A stretch of 33,000 nt of DNA, from NCBI GenBank assembly GCA_011109175.1, contig RDEW01000073.1, forward strand, positions 59,662 to 92,661, written 5' to 3'. The stretch comes from Dicyema japonicum. Lineage: Eukaryota; Animalia; Dicyemida. Below, one piece after another: positions 3,810 through 26,040 of the stretch (positions within the stretch are counted from its first letter, which is position 1; each line of letters starts with the position of its first letter). Made by a program: the position numbers and the translations under genes. The notes beneath the pieces are model-generated. The model had not been told where the DNA came from, ran no database searches, and saw nothing but the letters and a program-made list of their open reading frames with translations.

Positions 3810-4129
3810 TTCAAAAATGTCATAACGAGACGATTATGTATGCGACTATGTATGTAAATTACACTAATAATTGTCAGATGAATATGTATAAATCATATAG
3901 TGTCCGGAAGCTAAACCCCCCCCTCCGTCATCGAGTGTTTCCCAATCAAAATAGACTGATATACGTACCCTGAAAATGAATGGGACGAGCTCCCTCGTTA
4001 AAAGTCGACACGAAATATGCATATATCATCTAAAACCTTGCGTCAAACGGATTGCGGGCCCTTATGGACATCTACCAAGTGACCTTGAACTCAGGAAGAA
4101 AGGAAATAGAGTAACGGTTATATAGAAGG

Positions 4130-4280
4130 TGCCCTGACTGCGTGGCTATTCCCTCTCATGATAGCGAGCGAGATTCGCTCAAATAACCAGCAGCGCTCAC
4201 AAGGGTCTCCTTTTTGCGTAGCGATCCGTTTCCCTAGACGACTTAAGAATTCCTTGAGATTCATTCAACAAGCGAATTAT
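4130..4280 (-). repeat. 3' fragment of a CRE-clade non-LTR element; inverted copy of about 9500-9625
   Basis: The reverse complement of 4131-4200 (GTGAGCGCTGCTGGTTATTTGAGCGAATCTCGCTCGCTATCATGAGAGGGAATAGCCACGCAGTCAGGG) nearly matches 9557-9625. It encodes WLFERISLAIMRGNSHAV, which resembles the CRE C-terminal motif. Confidence 0.8.
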
Positions 4281-4594
4281 CAAGTTCATAGTCTTCCAGT
4301 GTTTCACTGTTTTTAAGAATTTTTAAGTTTCTTTATCGGATATGGGATAATTCTTTTATCGGAGAATTAAGAATAAAGTATTAAGTTATTTTTGAAATCT
4401 TTCTTTTCCGTTCAATATAAATTTGGGTATTCTTTCTGACCACGTAGCATTGTAAGACATTAAATTTAAAAAGTAAATTCATTTACATTTAGAATAAAAA
4501 CAAAATAAATTAATTCGAAATTTTTAATAATTGCCTTTCGGATTGCAGATTATGAAGCTTCGGTCTATTGAAGCTTGTTTCTATGGAAACTTTG

Positions 4595-4645
4595 TAAAAT
4601 TTCGCTGACTCATCGAAATTTTCGGATTAATGAGGGTTTACTGTA
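4595..4645 (-). mobile_element. Isolated pogo/Tigger-like terminal inverted repeat
   Basis: The minus strand reads TA-CAGTAAACCCTCATTAATCCGAAAATTTCG, a typical pogo-type TIR start after a TA dinucleotide. TTCGG subterminal motifs recur at about 4537-4625. Confidence 0.5.
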
Positions 4646-5099
4646 TTATAAACCTTTTAAAGATATTAAGATAATTTCAGTTTAATTAATGGAACTCGCT
4701 GAAACATTCGCTCAGCTTACAAGAACTCAAATGAGTGAATGCCAGAACTGCAGAGCGAGTCTTCAAAACATTGGTCATATAACCATGAAAGGTAACTCTC
4801 AATCAGTTCTGAGTGGTCGTAAATATTGACCCTCCATTAAAATTTTGTTTATTATTAACTTATAAAGTTATATTCGACATGTGCGAAACCCAAAACGATT
4901 TCAATATCATGTTTTATCTCCGCTTGTTGCAGTAAGAAAGCTTCAGAGGACGTTTCGTATTCAAAGCCTTTCATGGTCGAGACTTCGGGTGTGATGAGAT
5001 CATGTTCCCTTACTTTCTAGCAATCCATCAGTGGCTTATTTCAAGGAATAAACGGAGATAACATTTTGTTATTTTATTCATTTAAAAACTAAGAAAAAA

Positions 5100-6380
5100 A
5101 AGATTATTAATGACAAGAAAAAATAATGAACCTTCTAACCAATTTACCACTTGGGCGATTACTGGCTTCTCTCATAATCGAGAACGCACTGCCCAAGACG
5201 ATTTGCAAGAAAATGAGGTTAATTAGGCACCTCCTTTCTCTTCTATCAATTTCCATTTTCGAGATGAGCGATCCAATGCTGTTTAACATGGTCAGTGATC
5301 TTTTTTATTAGTACAAAATAAAAAACTGACCTAATTACCACCGTTACCTGTAATATCATGCATCATCAACTAATTCTCTCTTGGTGATAATAACATGAAC
5401 TATATTTTCTATTATCATAGTTCATATTTTATAAAATGAAATCTAAAACTAAATAAACAAACAAAATTTTATATAACTATTCATTAAAAAAAAGTGCTAA
5501 AAAACTTTTCAAGTTATCAAATGATAGACTGGGTGCAACACATTAACCAGCTCACTATAGGTTCGAGATTTTTATTAAAAATTGAGAAAATCAATTTAAT
5601 CACCTCTTTTTTACTTTTATCATCATTAAAAAACGTTCGAGGAAAGACCTAGAATGAAATAATTAACGGTAATATTTTGATCACAATTACTAAACAGCAG
5701 ATAAATAACACCAACGGCACGTAATCGATTCATCCGAAAACAGCTAAATGTGCAAATAGAACAAACCTTTTTAATTAAATGTGGAAGCATGTTAACTACA
5801 TCAGCACTCATTCCACTATTCCGCAACAGGCAAGCAATTCCTTCCAATTTAAAATTGCCTTACACATAACATCAGTAGGAGTGACATACATTTAGTAAAT
5901 AAACCAATGCAGAATTAATTCAATGTGGCAGTCCTAGCCAATTAAACTTCTGAATATTTTTAAGTCAAGTAGCCTCTATCAAAGAAAACATTTCTTTGTG
6001 GGAAACTGAAGTAAAGTAGCTTGTTTGAAACATCAGCTGGGAAATTCTGGTTAAAATATAATTTTAGTTCTTCCAAATGCAAAGCACTCGGTTTGTCAAA
6101 TTTCCATTTTGTGAACTATTTTAATAAAACTTGGAAATACAGTCACTTGTTTTGTCATGGAACTCGTATTGGCTGGAAAATTCTAAAATTAAAAAGTGGA
6201 TAAACAAATTGTGTATTTCCCTCCTGTTGATCCTCGTCAGAAGTATTCTAAATGTTAAAATTTATCAATTACAATCGTTATTCGTTCTATGCGTCTGAAT
6301 TTCTGAATAAGAGGAGTCGCTTCTTTTTCCAACCCAGATAGACTTTCCCCACCAGTCCGATATTTCAGACTAAAATGAAA
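5100..6380 (-). pseudogene. CKAP5: XMAP215/ch-TOG (CKAP5/Msps)-like fragment covering TOG5; tiny introns, frameshifts and a stop
   Basis: Spliced fragments are FTKWKFDKPSALHLEELKLYF (cf. [21 protein letters not shown]), IELILHWFIY*MYVTPTDVMCKAI (cf. [24 protein letters not shown]), NMLPHLIKK (cf. SFIPYLVVK) and MLNSIGSLISK (cf. ALKEIAVHIGD). GT-AG introns at 6248-6272 (25 nt), 6183-6205 (23), 6116-6140 (25) and 5744-5766 (23). Confidence 0.65.
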
Positions 6381-6399: not shown

Positions 6400-7700
6400 A
6401 TCAACTATCATTCCTGGAATCACTCGATGTAAACGAAATATTCGACTCGGTATCAAGAAAAATTCATTCAAACCGAATGTTGAATATTAAACTTTTACTG
6501 ATCAACTTCCTGAAAGGAATACAAGTCCACTCGTAAAATGGACTAAATATATTAAACCAAGAATCCTTTTATACAATACGATTATTCAAGTCAATACCAC
6601 GTCAAACAACATGGGAGTCATGTTTGATCAGGGACTTCCTTAGCTAAACATGTGAAAATCAGGAAAAAAATGAAAATCTTAACGATGTAGCTTTCGGAAA
6701 CAATGCTGGATCCCTCTCTACTATCTACAGACAGTTTTCCACCCAGTATTGACATATGCGAGTGCAACGTGGTCAATGACAATTTCTACTCCAGATTCTT
6801 AGAGTAAAGTCGACCAGTATTAATTAACAAACTCTCTCAACGAACACCAATAGACCAGAATTCACAGCAGATGGCGGAGATGGATTACGGTCTTGGAGTT
6901 AGGAGCAGTAGAAAATAGACGTGTGGAAAACCATCCGAAATGTTGCAAAGGGAGAAGAAACCTCCCCCGAGGATGACTATACTCAACGAGACGTTAACAA
7001 TTTGATAAAATTCTACACAAAAATTTCGTACAAGGAACACAGGAAGTCGGGAGTGCTTCTCTCCTCATGGAGAAAACTGAAGAAGGATTCTAACCCAGTT
7101 TACTTCTCGGATGAGGACGTGATGAATGAGCTGCATTTTACAAGAACAACGTACTCTGCCGGTCCCGACAACATTCCAGCAGTGTTATTAAAGAACCTTG
7201 GAGATATTGGAGTCGGTTTTCTAACGTCGGTGTATAACTATTCAATTAATTGTAATGTAATACCGTTGTTATGGAACAAGCCAACATACGACCTATACTG
7301 AAACATGGGAAACCTAAGGAAGATCCAGCATCATTTAGACATGAGTCATTGTTATGTTCATATCGAAAATTCTGGAAAGGCTTGTGCTTGTGAGAATCAA
7401 GGCTTTCTTACCAGATAAGGATTTTCAACACGGATTCAAGAGCGATTGTTATACATCAACGTACCTACAGAAATTAACCAACTTTATTAGAGATGGTTTT
7501 TCAAACAAACCAAGGCATTTGAAGACAGTCTTATGTTCCATTGATATTAACAAGGCCTTTGATTCTATTTCGAGAAAAATACTATCAAAGAAAATTTTCC
7601 AGTCCGAGATCCCGGGGAAGCTTAAACTTTGGATAAAAAATTTCTTAAGTGGACGAAGAGGACATGTATGCCTCGGAGGACTGAAATCATATGTTTTTTA
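6400..7700 (+). mobile_element. APE-type LINE reverse transcriptase remnants (at least two fragments)
   Basis: ORFs 6921-7301 (SAGPDNIP...LKNLG) and 7354-7701 (SKILERLVL, FQHGFK, DGFSNKPRHLKTVLCSIDINKAFDSI) are classic LINE RT motifs. 6420-6790 carries a degenerate RT C-terminal part (GVMFD, LTYASATW). Confidence 0.88.
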
Positions 7701-7849
7701 AAATCGTTAAAACTTTCAAAAATATTGTTTTTTGCTAATAATATAAATAGAGTCAAAAATTTGTCAAATTTGATTGAAATTTAATTTTTAGGTCAATAAA
7801 ATCTGTTTTTTATTAACCGCGTACTCTGAATCAATCTTACTTCTCATCA

Positions 7850-9630
7850 TCACGGACTATTCTGGTGAAGATCATCAATGCCGCGCTCCCAGTCGCTGGG
7901 GAGGACCTATCTAGTACGATCGAGGATGCCTTCCTGACGAATTCAATACAAGACTTGGTTCGTCGCGCTGAGACTTAATCGCAAGGGTAACTGAAATGAG
8001 TCTCTCGCTGTCACCATGAAGACAACCATTCGTTTTTATTAAAGGAACCCATTCCTCGGTTAACCAACACCTTTAACAAAATGCGGGAGACGTATAGTCA
8101 GAAGAAGGAAGTAGAAGTGTTCCCTCTCAAGAAAAATGATCGCTCGAAGTTAACCGAAGATGGAACTCGTGCAATCATTAAGGCATTTTTTCTAGCGGAA
8201 CGATCGCATCAACTGATGATATACTCCTTACAATACGGAATTTTGCCCCCAGTAGCAGTGCCGGGTTGGGAGGAATGAGAACTGTTCGTCTAAAAGACCT
8301 GACTTCTTTGTCAGTTGGAGATCAGAACTTTGTCATACGAATTCAGTTACTTCAATTATGAACCGAATTATGCCTGGACTACTTCCCGAAGTGTTCCCTC
8401 ACGTCCTGTTCTCCACGAACCTTATGGCCTCGGATAAAAAAGAAGGTGGAGTACGCCAAATTGTGGTCGGGTTTGTATACAGGAGACTGTTTTTTCAAGT
8501 AAATTCATCTTGGGGGAGAGTTATTCTCAAACTGAAGCATAGAAGATTTCCAAGGAAACTAGACATCAAGAACGCTCAACAATCTGAGAGAGATAATATT
8601 TTGGAAGTGTGTATGGAAAGATGTCTAATATTTTCTGTAGTCTACATTCATCCTTACTCTTCAGAGATACCTAATCCCTTCGTCTTCCAGAGTAAACAAG
8701 GAGATCCTTTGGACATCTGCTATTTTATCTTGCAATCAAAGGATTCACCTAACTTCCCCAATGGCACATAAACCAGTTGTATCTGGATGATGAGGACCGT
8801 CAGATACAGTCCACGTTCAGATGTTAATTCTGGCTTTACAATTGTGGACTTTCAATGAAAAATATTCACAAGTTATGTCATCGTTCATGAATTTGTTTCC
8901 CGGAAGTTTTTCCATCCCCAACGAAGACCTTATATTTCTCGGATCCCCAATCACCATGCGTACAATGGGGGACCATATGGTAAAAACGACGTTACTCTAG
9001 CAGATTCTGGCAGAATTTTCTATTGATCAGGATTTCGGTCATGCACGTGAAGCCTGAAACCGTACCTACCTGTTTTTCCACCTTCCTTGAACTCTTAACG
9101 AGGTCTGGTGATGACGTATGTCGAAAGTTATTTGAAGATCTACTGGTGTCATCTAACCAATGCCGTCGTGCTTGTTCGTTTTTGGGGTCTTCTTCCGAAA
9201 GTGGAACCTGGCTCAACGTCATTCCGAGTGGGGTTTTGACCATTCTCGATGATGAATGTGTTCGCATTGTGATCTCATTACAACTCGGATTGAAAGACTA
9301 TGTACCGCAACCATGGAAATTTGGGGACAAGATTGACTGTTTTGGCCTCATCAACACTCCTGCAGGGAAGAGTGCGAGTAAATATTCCAGACACGTGGAC
9401 TTGACCCAAGTCGTTAGAAGAATTTTGTTCCAAGATCTTCCAGATATCATTCTTTTTGTTTCTTTTACTCGCAATTAAAACTTCCCTTGCGCTACAACGC
9501 TGATTCAATTTCTGAGTCGTTTGGGAATCGGATTTATACACTCACATGAGATCTCCGTGAGCGCTGTTGGTTATTTGAGCGAATCTCCCTCGCTATCCTG
9601 AGAGAAAATAGCTACGCAGTCAGGGGGCTA
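7850..9630 (+). mobile_element. Degenerate CRE-clade non-LTR retrotransposon (RT + restriction-like endonuclease type)
   Basis: Motifs KKEGGVRQIVVGFVYRRL, KLDIKNA, QGDPL, YLDD (about 8780), SGTWLNVIPS...LDDECVRIVISLQLG, KYSRH and terminal WLFERISLAILRENS. 5' boundary approximate. Confidence 0.82.
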
Positions 9631-19640: not shown

Positions 19641-20250
19641 ACCACACCTATTCAATTCTTAAATGATATGCCCTCCTTACCAGTGACGATACTCTGCTTC
19701 TGACATATACGGATGATATAGTCGTGCGTTAATACTGCTGTTTACCGGATGCAAGCTTCATTGGACGATCTGAACTTTTTTCTCGTTAAGAACATTCTAC
19801 ATACGAGTCCCGAAAAGTCTTATACAACAATTTTCACAACAAACAGAAGATTTATAAACTCCGCTCCATGTGTAACCATAAATGGAAACTCAATCCCCAC
19901 GACCAACTTGGTCAAGGTACTGGGCGTAACTTACGACCCACTCTTTACCTTCAGCAAACACATCGACAACGTCATCTCCTCAAGACAACAAAAGCTAAAT
20001 TTTGTTAAAACACTCCTTGGACAATATAAGGGGCGTTTCAACTTAAATTTGTACTCGCTCTACGTGCACTATATTCAACCGTCTCTAACTTACGAGCGTG
20101 TGCTGCATGGGGAACCAAACTATCAAACGCGAATATGGAAAAAATCAACACATTCCAAAAAATGGCCATTAAGGCTCTGCAAAGATTTTCCCAGACATCT
20201 CTAAACCCTACACAATTTTAGGAGTTAATGAGGAGAATCGAAGCCTTATT
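19640..20250 (+). mobile_element. LINE RT C-terminal fragment
   Basis: TYTDDIV precedes ORF 19749-20204, which reads DDLNFFLVKNILHTSPEKS...KVLGVTYDPLFTFSKHIDNV...YIQPSLTY. Homologous to 10520-11060 on the opposite strand. Confidence 0.88.
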
Positions 20251-22360
20251 ACCCTCCAAAATAGTTAGAAACCCCCGCCCATTCTGGAAATGCGTTGGAT
20301 CCCGGAAAGAACCCGAGCAAAAATGAGATGGCTAGTCGAGGCGGCCGGAATCACATGTAGGCTATGTAGTTATTTAATTTGTCGGTGATTTTTAGTTTTT
20401 AATAATAATTTGTTTTCAGAATAGGATGATCAAGGAATTCTTACTGATACTTTGGAAAACGTGTGTGTTGATAGCATAATTGTACAAGTCCGATACTGCA
20501 GCCTTATCCCCCGGTCGAATTGGAGAGGGGAATTATCTTTTTGTGTAATCTTTGGACCATGGATCAATTGGCCGGTGTAATGGTCGAAAAAATCTGTTAT
20601 ATCATTTCCGCGTTATTAGCTAGTACTTTACAGAGTTCCTTGGCGTGTCTAACATTTCTATTTGCTGTGTCGAAAGTCCTGGAAAAACTCACACTTCCTA
20701 TGTGCCCAAAAAGCAACGTATAGTCTCTTAGCGACGTTGTTCACGGATTATCCCGGAGAAAATTTTTAAGGCCTATTGTCTCTTAGTTGACGAGGCCCTT
20801 TCCATCCGATCAAGATGCCTTCCCCCGGACTAATTCGATGTAGGACGTTGTGCGTCTGCTCAGTTTTGCGCTTTCCGCTCTGGGACTTTCTAGAGATTGT
20901 CACCGAAAGGGGTCTCGCTGTTACCACAAAGAAAAAAATGCATTCTTTTGTGCAATTCACTTTACTGATTGCCCTACTTAGTCTGACCGAATAGGAGATA
21001 CTCGGAATTCGAATTAGGAAGTTGATGTTCTTTGCCTCAAGAACTTCCTTCGAAGGTATTCGTAGGTGGAACCCATGCTTCCATCAAGTCAAACACACAA
21101 CACCGTCTCACAATCCGCAATCCGTCACTTTTTTTCTAAAGTGAGAACCCTTACCCTATCACGTTTTGATATTAAGAAAGTCTCACTTTTACTTCTTTAT
21201 TGGAGATTTAAAAGCCAATTTCGTTTTATTCCACTAACAATTTACAGAAAAAAGCTACTTATCAGATCTAACGTGATTCATCCATACAAGAAGTGTGTCG
21301 CTCTCGGAAGGAACACCGAGAAGGGATGAGGGACTGGTTAAGGAGGTCGAGATCACCTGACGGCCCCCAATCTCTTTATTTTGTCGGTGATACTTGATTT
21401 TAAATAAAATAAATAAAACGTGTGCCGGGACAAATTCCTCTTTTAAAGTTTATTAATCGAAAATCGAGGACAGAGAGGCTATTAGACAAATAAATCAGTG
21501 TAAAGGATGTCCTGTACATATTATTCATGGGAAAATTAAGGAATCAGCAGTAATAGACTGTTCCAAACACGCGAAGTGGGAGTTAAACAAGTACAGAGCA
21601 TTAATGGCTGGGAAACAAAAATAGAATCTTTTTCCAAACTCATGGATCTTGGCCGATTCTGATCTCAGAAGGAGCGAAGTGGAGAAGGTAGTCACACAGA
21701 TTACATCTCAGACCAATGATTTTCCGTTTGAATATGGGCAAAGGGTCATTCTTCTGGTTTCTTGTCATCTCTACAATCCAGTCCAACAGGCTCAAATTGA
21801 GCTGGGAAGCCTGCTGCCTCGAGGGTTTGCAGAATGAGCGACCTGCACTTTTATTTCATCAAATATTGAAGATTAAATTTCATGAGATATATTTCATTAT
21901 TCGAAAAAATTGAAGAATTCGGATCAAACCTCGGACTCTCGTTATAGACCACGTGGCCAGGTTTCAAAGGTTAAAGAGGTCGAAAATTTCAATTTTCATC
22001 GTGAAAATATGATTTTGAGAATTAACTCGTCGTTAGGGCTTACGTGTACAGTTCTCCAATATAGAAGAGGTCGAAAGACTTATATTGGGGATGGCACAGA
22101 TAAAGTGTAGTTAAGACAGCAGACATAATAAAAAACGTAATAGCAAAACTCAGTCATATTCATAAAATAGAGGTAACCTCTTTTTAATCCATTCATCTTC
22201 TTCCTTGTCAAGTGTAGTAGCCAAAATAATCTCCAACTCTGATAAATCAGGGTATTCAAAATTCGGGAATTTAGACAAAATACTAAAATCCCTGGAGAAA
22301 GAACAAGAAGTCTGAGGGGCAGATTGCGGACTATGAGTGAACTGACACGTGGAGAGACGT

Positions 22361-24905
22361 TTAGGGAACGACCAAATCAGGAACAGATCTGTTTCCCAAT
22401 CGTTCACATTGCTGCTGAGTCAGAGTTATTGGTCGTATCTCCACTTGTCTCTGTAACGAACTCCCAAACACTTGTTTGCTATCACTCATGTTTTGCATCC
22501 TCCTACGAAGTTGAGCCTGTTCCCTCATTCTCTTTCTGTCCTGTAGGTCATTCGCCCGTCGTTTGAATACACTGCATAATTTGGCTCCACAATGCTCATT
22601 CGTGCATTCTAACAGGTGGGTCTCGTATATCCTGCCCAGACACTTACACAGTCTACACGTAGTCCTGCTCTGACAGACATTATTGAAATGGTGAGGTAAC
22701 AAATGCTCCTTATACTGAATACACAACACACGTGTGCATGTAGAATCATAACAAAATAGAGTGTGGGACACATTCCCTCTAAAGTCATCTATTTCGGGTC
22801 GAGTCTGTGAGGGGGCATGGGCTCCAACTTCAATGAATCCGTGAGGATGTGACACCGTCTTATAGCACTGTTGACACAAATCAAAGTCCTTGCATCTATT
22901 ACAGCAGACCGTATCTGGGATATCTGAATGTGACAGTTATGACAGTTGTAGGAAAAGAAATGTTTGTGCAGTTCTATCACAAAGGCTTGAGTGGAAAAGA
23001 GAGCTCTTCTTAGAGTCGAGAATTCGTAGTTCCTTTCTCTACAGAAGGTTAGGAAGGCATCCCGACTGTCCACTAGCTCACAGAATAGCTCAGGGTCAGG
23101 GTCACTTATGTTGGTTAAGTGGCAATTTAGACGACTAGAGTGAAGTTCAATCACAAAGAATCCATTCCTGTTCTTCTCCAAAGTCCCCAATAAGTCCTGA
23201 TGAGTGGCATCCTCCTCCAATCTAAGAGGCCAAAAGTCGCCATCCATATAAGGGATTTGTGCGGGGGAGGTGATCCCATTATCATGAGCACAGGCATAGA
23301 TATCCTAAATAAAGACATATTCCACCTGGTACGAACGAATAGCTTTCTGATTAATTGCATTATTAAGCATAATTTTGTACCATTCTATCAGTTTCTTAGC
23401 CGTAGGGGTCTTCTGTTCGAAGGGGTGACAGTAAAATATGTAGTCGTCTCTATCACCAGGGGGACACGCCCATATGTGTACCCAGGCGTAACTTATATAA
23501 CCTTAATCGATACCCCAGTTTGCGGACGTAATCCATGTATGATATCAACAGTTCGTGGAACACCCGGGTACGGAGGAACTTTGGGTGGAAGAAGTGGATG
23601 GAATCGAGGTAGGAGATGTAGACACGACTACAGTAATATGTCCAACAACTACCGTTTATTGGGTTCAGGACACTCAGAGTTGTACTCCTGTGTGTGGAAG
23701 GCAAAGAAACATAGTTCAGAGTTCTCCCTTACTTGGAAGGCATACACCGTTTTGGCTCGATAGGGAAGTTTAACCCCCAGCAACTCCTTCATCCGGGGTT
23801 TTATTTCGCACTCTTTCGACACACATGACAGAACACGCACGTGGATGGTCCCACAATCGATCCCACTGCTCTCAGAACGTAGAAAGGCGTTCACTCTATC
23901 CTCAATGTAAGCCCCTAACTGTGTCTGAGGGATGTCTAGGAATTAAACTGGGGGTTACTTTTTACTGAAAACTTTGTCGGAGTTCCACAACGTGTACTCA
24001 GTGGGGTACAGCTCCTCGTGGTATAGACACACACCTGGTGAAACGAACGACCACACTCTCCACAGTCCACCATCAATTCGGGGTCACGGACGTTGTTCTT
24101 AGAAAGAACAAAGTTCTCCTTGGGGATTGGACTGTCAGCAGCCACAACCCCCTCAGCCGCATTATAGCACCTTAACACAGCACACCTGCTCTCCACAAAC
24201 ATAGTAGTCGGCCTCCCCTCCAATTTGACAACTCAGGGGAGTACAACAGTAAAGGACTTTAAGGTTGTATTGATACTTCTTGGAACAACAGTAACCGAGG
24301 GACTTCATAACAACCTCAGCCTCCTGATAGAACTTTGCGGACAACTTTAATAAGTAAGGGACCGACCCTTTGAGCACATCTGGTCACGTTGTTCTTTGGA
24401 CCATTGTAGAGACGGGCGTTGGAGAATATTAGGTCCACAGTCTCGATCAACTCCCAACCGCTGGAATAGGACCGAGCACGTGCTGTGGATATGTCCATTG
24501 GGTTTTTGATAACTGAGTAATAGTCTTCCGCGAAATCCTTGATAGGATCAACGGGATAACGGAACGGAATTGAGTCTGAGCCGGAATTCCAGAGCATGTC
24601 GAAGACGGGGTCAAATGCCTCTTTGATCTCCGCCGGTGTGATTTCTAAGTGAGAAAAACCGTACTTTTGCATCCCCGCGAACTAGAGCCAGTAGGGCGTT
24701 CCTGTACTCTACCTTGAATAATTAATAGAAGGTACTCTGGATGAAACTGTAGTGAATATTTGTTTTTCTTTAGACGACACCCAGTCACCGCGAACCCTCT
24801 CCACACTACTTGATTACTGCCTCTATACAGCCACTTGACGCACTCCTCCCGTTCGAGAGCACTTATTATTGGTTCCTTCTGACAATCCTCATTTGAAGAG
24901 TCCAT
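22361..24905 (-). CDS. CBP: Miniaturised CBP/p300 (KAT3) histone acetyltransferase: short KIX - bromodomain - RING - PHD - HAT - ZZ - TAZ2, about 790 aa after splicing and indel correction
   Basis: Introns at 24806-24828 (23 nt), 24713-24735 (23), 24645-24664 (20), 24345-24366 (22), 23936-23958 (23), 23628-23652 (25), 23492-23513 (22) and 23305-23325 (21). Motifs include SIPFRYPVDP, KNPMDIST, NARLYN, VMKSLGYCC, CGRSFHQVCV, RRVYISYLDSIHFF, HIWACPP, LIEWYK, GDFWP, EFSTLRRA, CKDFDLCQQCY and QAQLRRRM. Single-base indels are needed near 24670, 24172 and 22908, plus a compensating pair near 24026/23990. The 3' end is uncertain. Confidence 0.95.
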
Positions 24906-25479
24906 TAAATTCTTTTTATTATTTAATAAAACACCGACACAACAAAACACTAAAATTATGAATTTATTATGTAAATTTTATTATTTTTGAATTTATAACT
25001 TTTATTCAAAATTAAATTTGATAATTTTACCTACCATTTAAAAATAAATATATATAAAAATCAAATTACACTAGGAACGTCAGATTATATTTAGAAGTCT
25101 GTCCAGGATAATATAAGAAACCTTCCCCTTATTAGAGATTAATCCTGTATTCCAAGGCCAACTGCAGAAGGAAACCTATAGACACCAGGATTACTCAATT
25201 TAGACGTTACTCTTATCTTTTTGTGGTTTATGAGTTAATAATTTAAATTTTTTAAGACGATTTTTATTGACCTTAAAAATTCAAAAAATTGACCTTTATT
25301 GACTGTAAACCCATTTTATCTGCTAAATGAAGATGAGAAGAGGTTAATAAATATGCTAATAAAACAACTTGAGTACAAATGCGTGTATTAAGTCTTCCGC
25401 CTGTATAATTGACGCGGTATTAATTCTCACGATGGCTATCGAGATCAAACGGAGGTCAACTGGGTTTCGTTGACGTCAT

Positions 25480-26040
25480 TGCCTTTGAGTGCCTCCTGAC
25501 ATCCCAGATTCTTGAGAAAAATAAAGACTTTCTGCCTATTTCTCTAGTTTCCTTGAAAGCAATTCTACAGAACATGAGCCGTCTGTGACATTTCTACGAC
25601 GGAAAGGGTCTTTATCACTCTCCTGCTGATGTTATTAAAAGATAGGGAGTCGACACAGATGCCGTCTCATACTAATGGCTTCTCCTCGAACGGAAAGTTA
25701 TGATTCCGTTTGGTTTTTGGTCTCCCCGGTCCAGGTCAGCGGGCTCCAACGTGGAAGGGTATCTAGCAGACTCCAGTGCACGCTTTACGATATTATGTAA
25801 TGAATTATATCTCCCCCCCCCCCGCTTCTTGGGTAAGAAAGAGCATTTTATCCGTAGGCACCTCGCTTCCACCGAATTAGTAATGAAATGCTTTATATAT
25901 TTTCAATCTCAGTCAAATAGAAATCTCGATGCGAACTGTAGCATTGTCGAGATGGGTACCAATACTTCCGATCCCTCGAATCTGTCAACCACTAAACAGG
26001 GCGCCGGTATTGATTCGAGCTTTAAGTGGTATCTTTAATA
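25480..26040 (-). mobile_element. CRE-clade non-LTR remnant (endonuclease region)
   Basis: IGTHLDNATVRIEISI and GRYNSLHNIVKRALESARYPSTLEPADLDRGDQKPNG, the degenerate RH..LN..IKRAL..A..PS.LEP..L.R.D.KRPDG motif. Confidence 0.8.

Follow-up and report, generated by a model that had tools for sequence, protein, structure and literature searches.

The minus strand of a 33,000-nucleotide (nt) stretch of the Dicyema japonicum genome (assembly GCA_011109175.1, contig RDEW01000073.1, positions 59,662 to 92,661 of the forward strand; hereafter the window, in whose own coordinates all positions are given) probably carries, from 24905 to 22150, an intact gene for a compact lysine acetyltransferase of the CBP/p300 (KAT3) family, predicted to comprise six exons and five introns of 21–24 nt and to encode 883 amino acids (aa). 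The predicted protein is about one third the size of vertebrate CBP/p300 and retains the catalytic core together with ZZ and TAZ2. A previous reading made from the sequence only had described a minimal KAT3 coactivator of this relative size, with about 790 aa in the order KIX-bromo-RING-PHD-HAT-ZZ-TAZ2, eight introns of 20–25 nt and an end at 22361. Its minus-strand CBP/p300 assignment, its start codon at 24905, the retention of the core and the reduced size all stand, the first on the strength of Pfam domains found in the exon open reading frames (ORFs), whereas the KIX domain, the intron count and the end of the protein have to be given up.

Domain content and gene structure

A chain of ORF pieces runs along the minus strand from about 24905 to about 22150. 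Pfam profiles matched the exon ORFs for Bromodomain (E 5e-13 to 6e-13), RING_CBP-p300 (3e-8), PHD_P300 (1e-5) and ZZ (5e-5), and HAT_KAT11 was matched in three exon pieces with E values of 2e-7 to 2e-9; the PHD_P300 score of 25.4 bits on the uncorrected piece lies just below the 27-bit cut-off. By Pfam, Protein Data Bank (PDB) and full-length CBP comparisons, the order of bromodomain, RING, PHD, HAT_KAT11, ZZ and TAZ2 is collinear with canonical CBP/p300, so that the earlier order holds from the bromodomain to TAZ2. Once corrected as described below, the model aligns collinearly with frog CBP (XP_073504360.1; 2416 aa) and beetle CREBBP (XP_072396536.1; 2374 aa) from the bromodomain through the end of TAZ2, with 40% identity to frog CBP across 739 aligned columns. 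The long linkers of CBP/p300 are absent from the model, as had been noted before, and the N-terminal extension of ~88 aa and the C-terminal tail of ~115 aa contain no recognizable domain.

The motifs YLDS, LRT, HIWACPP and EWY and the bromodomain LYN, all listed by the sequence-only reading, are present. The acetyl-lysine-binding asparagine of the bromodomain is N168, within ARLYN. Alignment places the catalytic D412 of YLDS at p300 D1399, and R423/T424 (LRT), W449 (HIWACPP) and W479/Y480 (EWY) of the HAT domain at p300 R1410/T1411, W1436 and W1466/Y1467. After correction of the reading frame, RING and PHD are collinear with CBP, with a CBP-type RING inserted in a discontinuous PHD finger, the last CxxC of which is reduced to CC. 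The Pfam match to ZZ covers its second half, and CBP ZZ structures 1tot/2n1a were matched at E 1e-3; the first CxxC of ZZ is regained through one base added behind 22907. In an alignment with eight CBPs, no Cys/His ligand of ZZ or TAZ2 varies.

A divergent TAZ2 domain follows ZZ. The region is too divergent for Pfam, where zf-TAZ gave no match even at E 10. It matched the p300 TAZ2 structure 3io2 at E 1e-3 over 97 residues (phmmer), and hhalign gave E 0.005 with 12 of the 12 zinc ligands in register. An AlphaFold2 model, biased toward CBP by the CBP sequences in its alignment, has four helices at a predicted local distance difference test (pLDDT) score above 90, and the best 12 matches in a Foldseek search of PDB folds with this model are all TAZ2. 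Within the HAT domain, the lysine-rich autoinhibitory (autoacetylation) loop is missing from the predicted protein: relative to frog and beetle CBP it is replaced by a gap of ~60–70 columns, and the remaining loop has one lysine.

At four sites in the window (the boundary between N-terminal region and bromodomain, RING, PHD and ZZ), homology to p300 runs on in another frame. This homology continues through stretches that had been taken for introns and whose removal would delete Cys/His ligands, which suggested frameshifts in the window rather than introns. Seven public sequencing runs contain the stretch, and four of them were compared with window positions 21400–25900; one gave no alignment, and the other three, contigs of short-read DNA libraries, behave as DNA in that they contain no joints at any intron. 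Seven insertions or deletions (indels) relative to the window were found inside the gene, each at full contig depth and accompanied by few substitutions. Four of them fall exactly at the frameshift sites predicted beforehand from p300 homology. The indels are as follows (plus-strand positions; changes are those seen in the contigs).

Behind 24672: one C added, in all three libraries; where the N-terminal region meets the bromodomain.
24170: one base fewer; RING.
Behind 24026: one C added (T in one library; GTG/GTA, both Val, synonymous); PHD.
Behind 23989: AC added; PHD.
23642 or 23644: one base fewer; inside intron 3.
Behind 22907: one A added; ZZ.
Behind 22362: AGCAG added; supposed stop codon.

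These edits collapse the locus into six long ORFs and yield a coding sequence of 883 codons that runs on the minus strand from ATG 24905-24903 to TGA 22152-22150 with no internal stop. The stop at 22361-22363, where the protein had been thought to end, exists only through the five missing bases; with these restored, the frame continues for ~70 codons to the TGA. The resulting gene structure is given below.

24367..24905, minus strand: exon 1, with ATG 24905-24903, the N-terminal extension of ~88 aa and the bromodomain (~24606-24370).
24345..24366, minus strand: intron 1, 22 nt, GT..AG.
23959..24344, minus strand: exon 2, with the CBP/p300-type RING (~24311-24198) and the PHD finger (~24085-23990).
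23936..23958, minus strand: intron 2, 23 nt, GT..AG.
23653..23935, minus strand: exon 3, N-terminal part of HAT (Pfam HAT_KAT11 profile positions 13-82).
23628..23652, minus strand: intron 3, 25 nt as assembled in the window, 24 nt by the short-read contigs.
23514..23627, minus strand: exon 4, HAT with YLDS and LRT (HAT_KAT11 positions 82-122).
23492..23513, minus strand: intron 4, 22 nt.
23326..23491, minus strand: exon 5, HAT with HIWACPP and EWY (HAT_KAT11 positions 121-177).
23305..23325, minus strand: intron 5, 21 nt, ending in an in-frame TAG.
22150..23304, minus strand: exon 6, with the C-terminal half of HAT (to ~22966), ZZ (~22953-22830), TAZ2 (~22777-22487), a tail of ~115 aa and TGA 22152-22150.

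Once the base behind 24672 is restored, the N-terminal and bromodomain ORFs of exon 1 form one frame, a continuous ORF of 196 codons. In the window, exon 2 carries a surplus base at 24170 and is short of one base behind 24026 and of two behind 23989; corrected, it is a single ORF of 149 codons that regains CYNAAEG and VCVLYHEE, both homologous to CBP. Exon 6, short in the window of one base behind 22907 and of five (AGCAG on the plus strand) behind 22362, becomes an ORF of 386 codons. The five remaining introns are GT..AG stretches that break the frame and whose removal gives gapless collinearity with CBP. Removal of intron 1 restores the frame and joins ..CAQR/LSAKFYQE.. (the slash marks the junction) opposite CBP ..YCTK/LAEVFEQE..; that of intron 2 joins ..TKFSVKN/IPQTQLGAYIEDRV.., equal in length to CBP ..NKFCAKRLQTTRLGCHLEDRV..; and that of intron 3 joins ..EPNKR/RVYISYLDS.. 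exactly as in CBP. Without introns 4 and 5, ..RKLG/YAWVHIWACPP.. and ..IRSYQ/DIYACAHD.. are collinear with CBP ..KKLGYVTGHIWACPP.. and ..IHDYKDIFKQATED.., respectively. Animal introns shorter than 30 nt are known only in myxobolids (myxozoans) and D. japonicum (PMC13644364).

Across window positions 21400–25900, about one small indel per 400–650 bases separates the window from the contigs, in coding and non-coding sequence alike, with very few substitutions. Such an indel-rich, substitution-poor pattern is the hallmark of consensus errors from long reads. Platanus (Illumina) and Falcon (PacBio RS II) assemblies were merged to give the D. japonicum assembly, which has a GC content of 36.7% and 49% repeats (PMC6736024), and we infer that the window's frameshifts and its early stop are unpolished long-read consensus errors of this hybrid assembly and not biology. 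The libraries differ from one another at 24026, 23549, 24638 and 25134; the C or T inserted at 24026 is, as listed above, silent, and C>T at 23549 leaves a Leu codon synonymous. These differences are consistent with pooled individuals and silent variation in a constrained gene. Other genes in the same part of the assembly likely carry false frameshifts that pass for 20-nt introns: where true introns measure 21–25 nt, indel errors are easily taken for tiny introns, and gene models need polishing before they are interpreted.

Because the catalytic, coenzyme A (CoA)-, acetyl-lysine- and zinc-binding residues of the core are all kept and the corrected ORF is free of stops, the sequence argues for a functional enzyme under selection. 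Several points weigh against this account of the locus. The three libraries come from one sample, possibly the source sample of the assembly itself. Homology and ORF structure are what predicts the five splice junctions, the ends of the transcript and expression of the gene. Neither the N- nor the C-terminal extension has homologues, and in-frame introns or another start (e.g. M79) may be present there. The protein was not found among 1.84 billion representative proteins, and neither an annotated model nor an orthologue supports the gene; exact look-up of the bromodomain ORF returned no record, and the N-terminal 77 aa found no usable match in the ESM Atlas.

Absent domains and alternative readings

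When eleven full-length CBPs were compared with the six-frame translation of the whole corrected window (phmmer --max), only bromodomain-to-TAZ2 was matched. Neither TAZ1 nor NCBD was matched anywhere in the 33 kb, in agreement with what had been read from the sequence, and KIX was likewise missing; on both strands, all matches outside the gene had independent E values above 0.2. The KIX domain that had been placed ahead of the bromodomain failed each of four tests: the region matched neither Pfam KIX/KIX_2 nor any PDB entry, hhalign against an alignment of four KIX domains gave a probability of 0.1%, and an AlphaFold2 model (pLDDT 55, low confidence) folds as alpha-beta-beta-beta-alpha and not as a three-helix bundle. 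Beyond the false stop, the additional 69 aa of tail matched nothing in Pfam or the PDB and gave a probability of 0.3% in hhalign against NCBD. The model contains neither NCBD/IBiD (Pfam Creb_binding) nor the glutamine-rich C-terminus of CBP/p300. Several CBPs matched, through their TAZ2 region, a 56-aa ORF piece at 3955-4122 (plus strand) repeatedly but insignificantly (independent E 2–4.5); the piece is without a Pfam match, and the Cys-rich similarity is probably due to chance.

The strongest alternative, although an unlikely one in our estimate, is that the locus is a core-only, fast-evolving paralogue and that a canonical full-length CBP with TAZ1, KIX and NCBD lies elsewhere in the genome. 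Annotations from several animals include short CBP-like proteins of this domain order, presumed to be extra copies or partial models, and a planarian has a multi-gene CBP family (bioRxiv 10.1101/2020.09.08.287045). Against a second gene speaks the extreme reduction of the D. japonicum genome, with 5,012 genes (PMC6736024). No second KAT3-like sequence was found within the 33-kb window, and none of 519 matches among the 1.84 billion representatives is a close relative, in a library that evidently does not hold the D. japonicum version of the gene.

The model might also be incomplete, with distant upstream or downstream exons, on the far side of the repeats at 25175-25325 or past the limits of the window, adding TAZ1, KIX or NCBD; this we consider improbable. 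Some longer introns do occur in D. japonicum, as the mean intron length of 38 nt exceeds the median (PMC13644364, PMC6736024), and the frame is open for 27 codons upstream of the ATG. The searches for TAZ1, KIX and NCBD described above point the other way, as do an AT-rich, promoter-like region directly 5' of the ATG and, at the other end, an ORF that closes with a clean stop and is followed by non-coding sequence.

The window could be right as it stands, its frameshifts and premature stop being real and the locus a pseudogene in decay or a null allele; this seems very improbable. As read, the window does change frame in RING, PHD, ZZ and the junction of the N-terminal region with the bromodomain, and the sequence-only reading had reckoned with a pseudogene if reads were to confirm the frameshifts and a separate full-length paralogue were present. 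The short-read contigs instead remove them: all are frame-restoring at full depth (e.g. 306.5/306.5), and the window version occurs in none. Non-coding flanks show a similar indel rate, with further indels at 25682 and 25812/3 and substitutions again rare, and the 883 corrected codons keep every catalytic and zinc-binding residue.

The model of eight introns of 20–25 nt and ~790 aa with KIX ahead of the bromodomain is scarcely tenable, even though 19–20 nt GT..AG stretches at the frame changes do restore the ORF in the uncorrected window: these stretches encode, in another frame, the CBP-homologous CYNAAEG, VCVLYHEE and CHNCHIQ, including zinc ligands, they are unnecessary given the short-read contigs, their AT content is below that of most real introns (47–60% against 57–73%), and KIX was rejected by all four tests. 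The higher intron count and the shorter protein arose because assembly errors were treated as introns; five introns suffice once the window is corrected. The candidate introns 24664-24645, 24170-24152, 24034-24015 and 22943-22924 are artefacts that compensate for one-base errors, and a 30-nt version of intron 2 (23965-23936) compensates for the two-base error. The protein spliced in this way loses conserved Cys/His ligands of the RING, PHD and ZZ fingers. A stop-free model of the uncorrected window built with as few introns as possible (750 aa, 8 introns of 20–58 nt) was also tried and rejected, as it cut out conserved sequence. Contamination from the octopus host was rejected on the intron lengths of 21–25 nt and an identity to Octopus CBP of only 52% over 97 residues.

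Surroundings of the gene

The GC content of the window is 30–45%, and retroelement fragments and high-copy repeats are present. At 21551-21852 and 25175-25325, on both flanks of the gene, contig depth is 10–20 times that of the gene (~4,000–6,200 versus ~300–335 in one library) and many short contigs end, so that both segments look like high-copy repeats. Just downstream of the corrected stop, a pair of 47-nt direct repeats (21939-21985 and 22030-22076) is 70% identical, with members 91 nt apart; this weak pair was all that a scan for repeats near the gene returned. With 187 aa, the plus-strand ORF at 23200-23763 is the longest of the window; it runs opposite the HAT exons, has nothing to support it and is best taken for a shadow ORF. 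Among broken ORFs, a reverse-transcriptase fragment is found at 7354-7698 (plus strand; Pfam RVT_1, E 5e-9), which suggests that the ORFs at 6921-9478 (plus strand), and perhaps that at 19749-20204 (plus strand), belong to degenerate copies of non-long-terminal-repeat retroelements. The other ORFs have no Pfam match. An Rfam scan of the window found nothing.

Proposed activity and comparison with known CBP/p300 proteins

If the intact 883-aa enzyme resembles p300 in its biochemistry, it would acetylate histone tails (histone H3) and other proteins, with chromatin contacted through the bromodomain and ZZ. In CBP/p300, TAZ2 is both a docking site for activation domains and an autoinhibitory element that is released by their binding (PMC10475075), and it has a part in directing H3K27 acetylation (bioRxiv 10.1101/2020.07.21.214338). 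Since TAZ1, KIX and NCBD are gone from the predicted protein, the sole candidates left for docking are TAZ2 and perhaps the two new tails, and transcription factors would be recruited solely through them. Since the loop is gone as well, activation by trans-autoacetylation could not operate; control by loop autoacetylation would have been lost, and autoinhibition based on RING and TAZ2 may remain.

We tentatively suggest, as a possibility that falls short of an expectation, that this protein is the only KAT3 of a dicyemid and that enhancer and promoter acetylation proceeds in this animal without TAZ1, KIX, NCBD or the autoacetylation loop, with recruitment through a divergent TAZ2 and two lineage-specific tails. 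Should it be the sole KAT3 of an animal of ~30 cells and ~5,000 genes, the bromodomain, RING-PHD, HAT, ZZ and TAZ2 would be marked as indispensable and TAZ1, KIX, NCBD and the autoinhibitory loop as dispensable, which would bear on how coactivator hubs shrink along with the transcription-factor repertoire. The supplements of the Dicyema genome paper make no mention of KAT11, KIX, TAZ, bromodomain or CREB; our literature searches linking dicyemids with p300, or Dicyema with CREB-binding protein, found nothing, and a dicyemid/orthonectid paper is likewise silent.

The likeness to frog CBP and beetle CREBBP lies in the domain order, the catalytic and CoA motifs, the bromodomain asparagine and the ZZ and TAZ2 ligands. 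Compared with animal CBP/p300, the Dicyema protein is without the N-terminal ~1,000 residues (TAZ1, KIX and linkers), NCBD/IBiD, the glutamine-rich C-terminus and the lysine-rich loop of ~60–70 aa; its TAZ2 falls under the Pfam threshold, the last CxxC of its PHD finger has become CC, and its short terminal tails are new. A HMMER search of the 1.84 billion representatives with the C-terminal half of HAT returned only distant animal CBPs, the top full matches reaching ~45–48% identity.

Parasite KAT3 orthologues with the same core are found in the flatworm Schistosoma mattheei (A0AA85BR26; 1961 aa), where two TAZ matches are seen, and in the nematode Soboliphyme baturini (A0A183IGD9; 1967 aa). 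Both keep KIX and a length of ~2,000 aa, so parasitism alone does not give the reduction seen in Dicyema. Closer in size are core-only CBP-like proteins of the tick Haemaphysalis longicornis (XP_077560859.1; 862 aa), Romanomermis culicivorax (A0A915L5B2; 1084 aa), the mealybug Planococcus citri (XP_065216745.1; 940 aa), the ant Temnothorax nylanderi (XP_071570940.1; 792 aa) and Steinernema hermaphroditum (KAK0412000.1; 714 aa, within a Steinernema range of 714–738 aa), of which those from the tick and from Romanomermis share the bromo-RING-PHD-HAT-ZZ-TAZ order of the Dicyema protein. These are not close relatives, being only ~43–47% identical to it over the C-terminal half of HAT. Their HAT domains span ~288–317 residues, which suggests a longer loop than that of Dicyema, and their TAZ2, where present, passes Pfam, unlike the Dicyema domain; they are either short paralogues or partial gene models. 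A core-only architecture as such is thus not new, but an animal whose only KAT3 looks like this would be.

Engineered p300 core constructs have been used for crystallography and in dCas9 fusions, and the versions made for crystallization are without the autoinhibitory loop. The Dicyema protein presumably shares the domain set of these constructs and, as predicted, adds ZZ, TAZ2 and two unique tails. As the sole KAT3 of its animal it would be the natural counterpart of the engineered p300 core, a compact, loop-less acetyltransferase with which such constructs could be compared.

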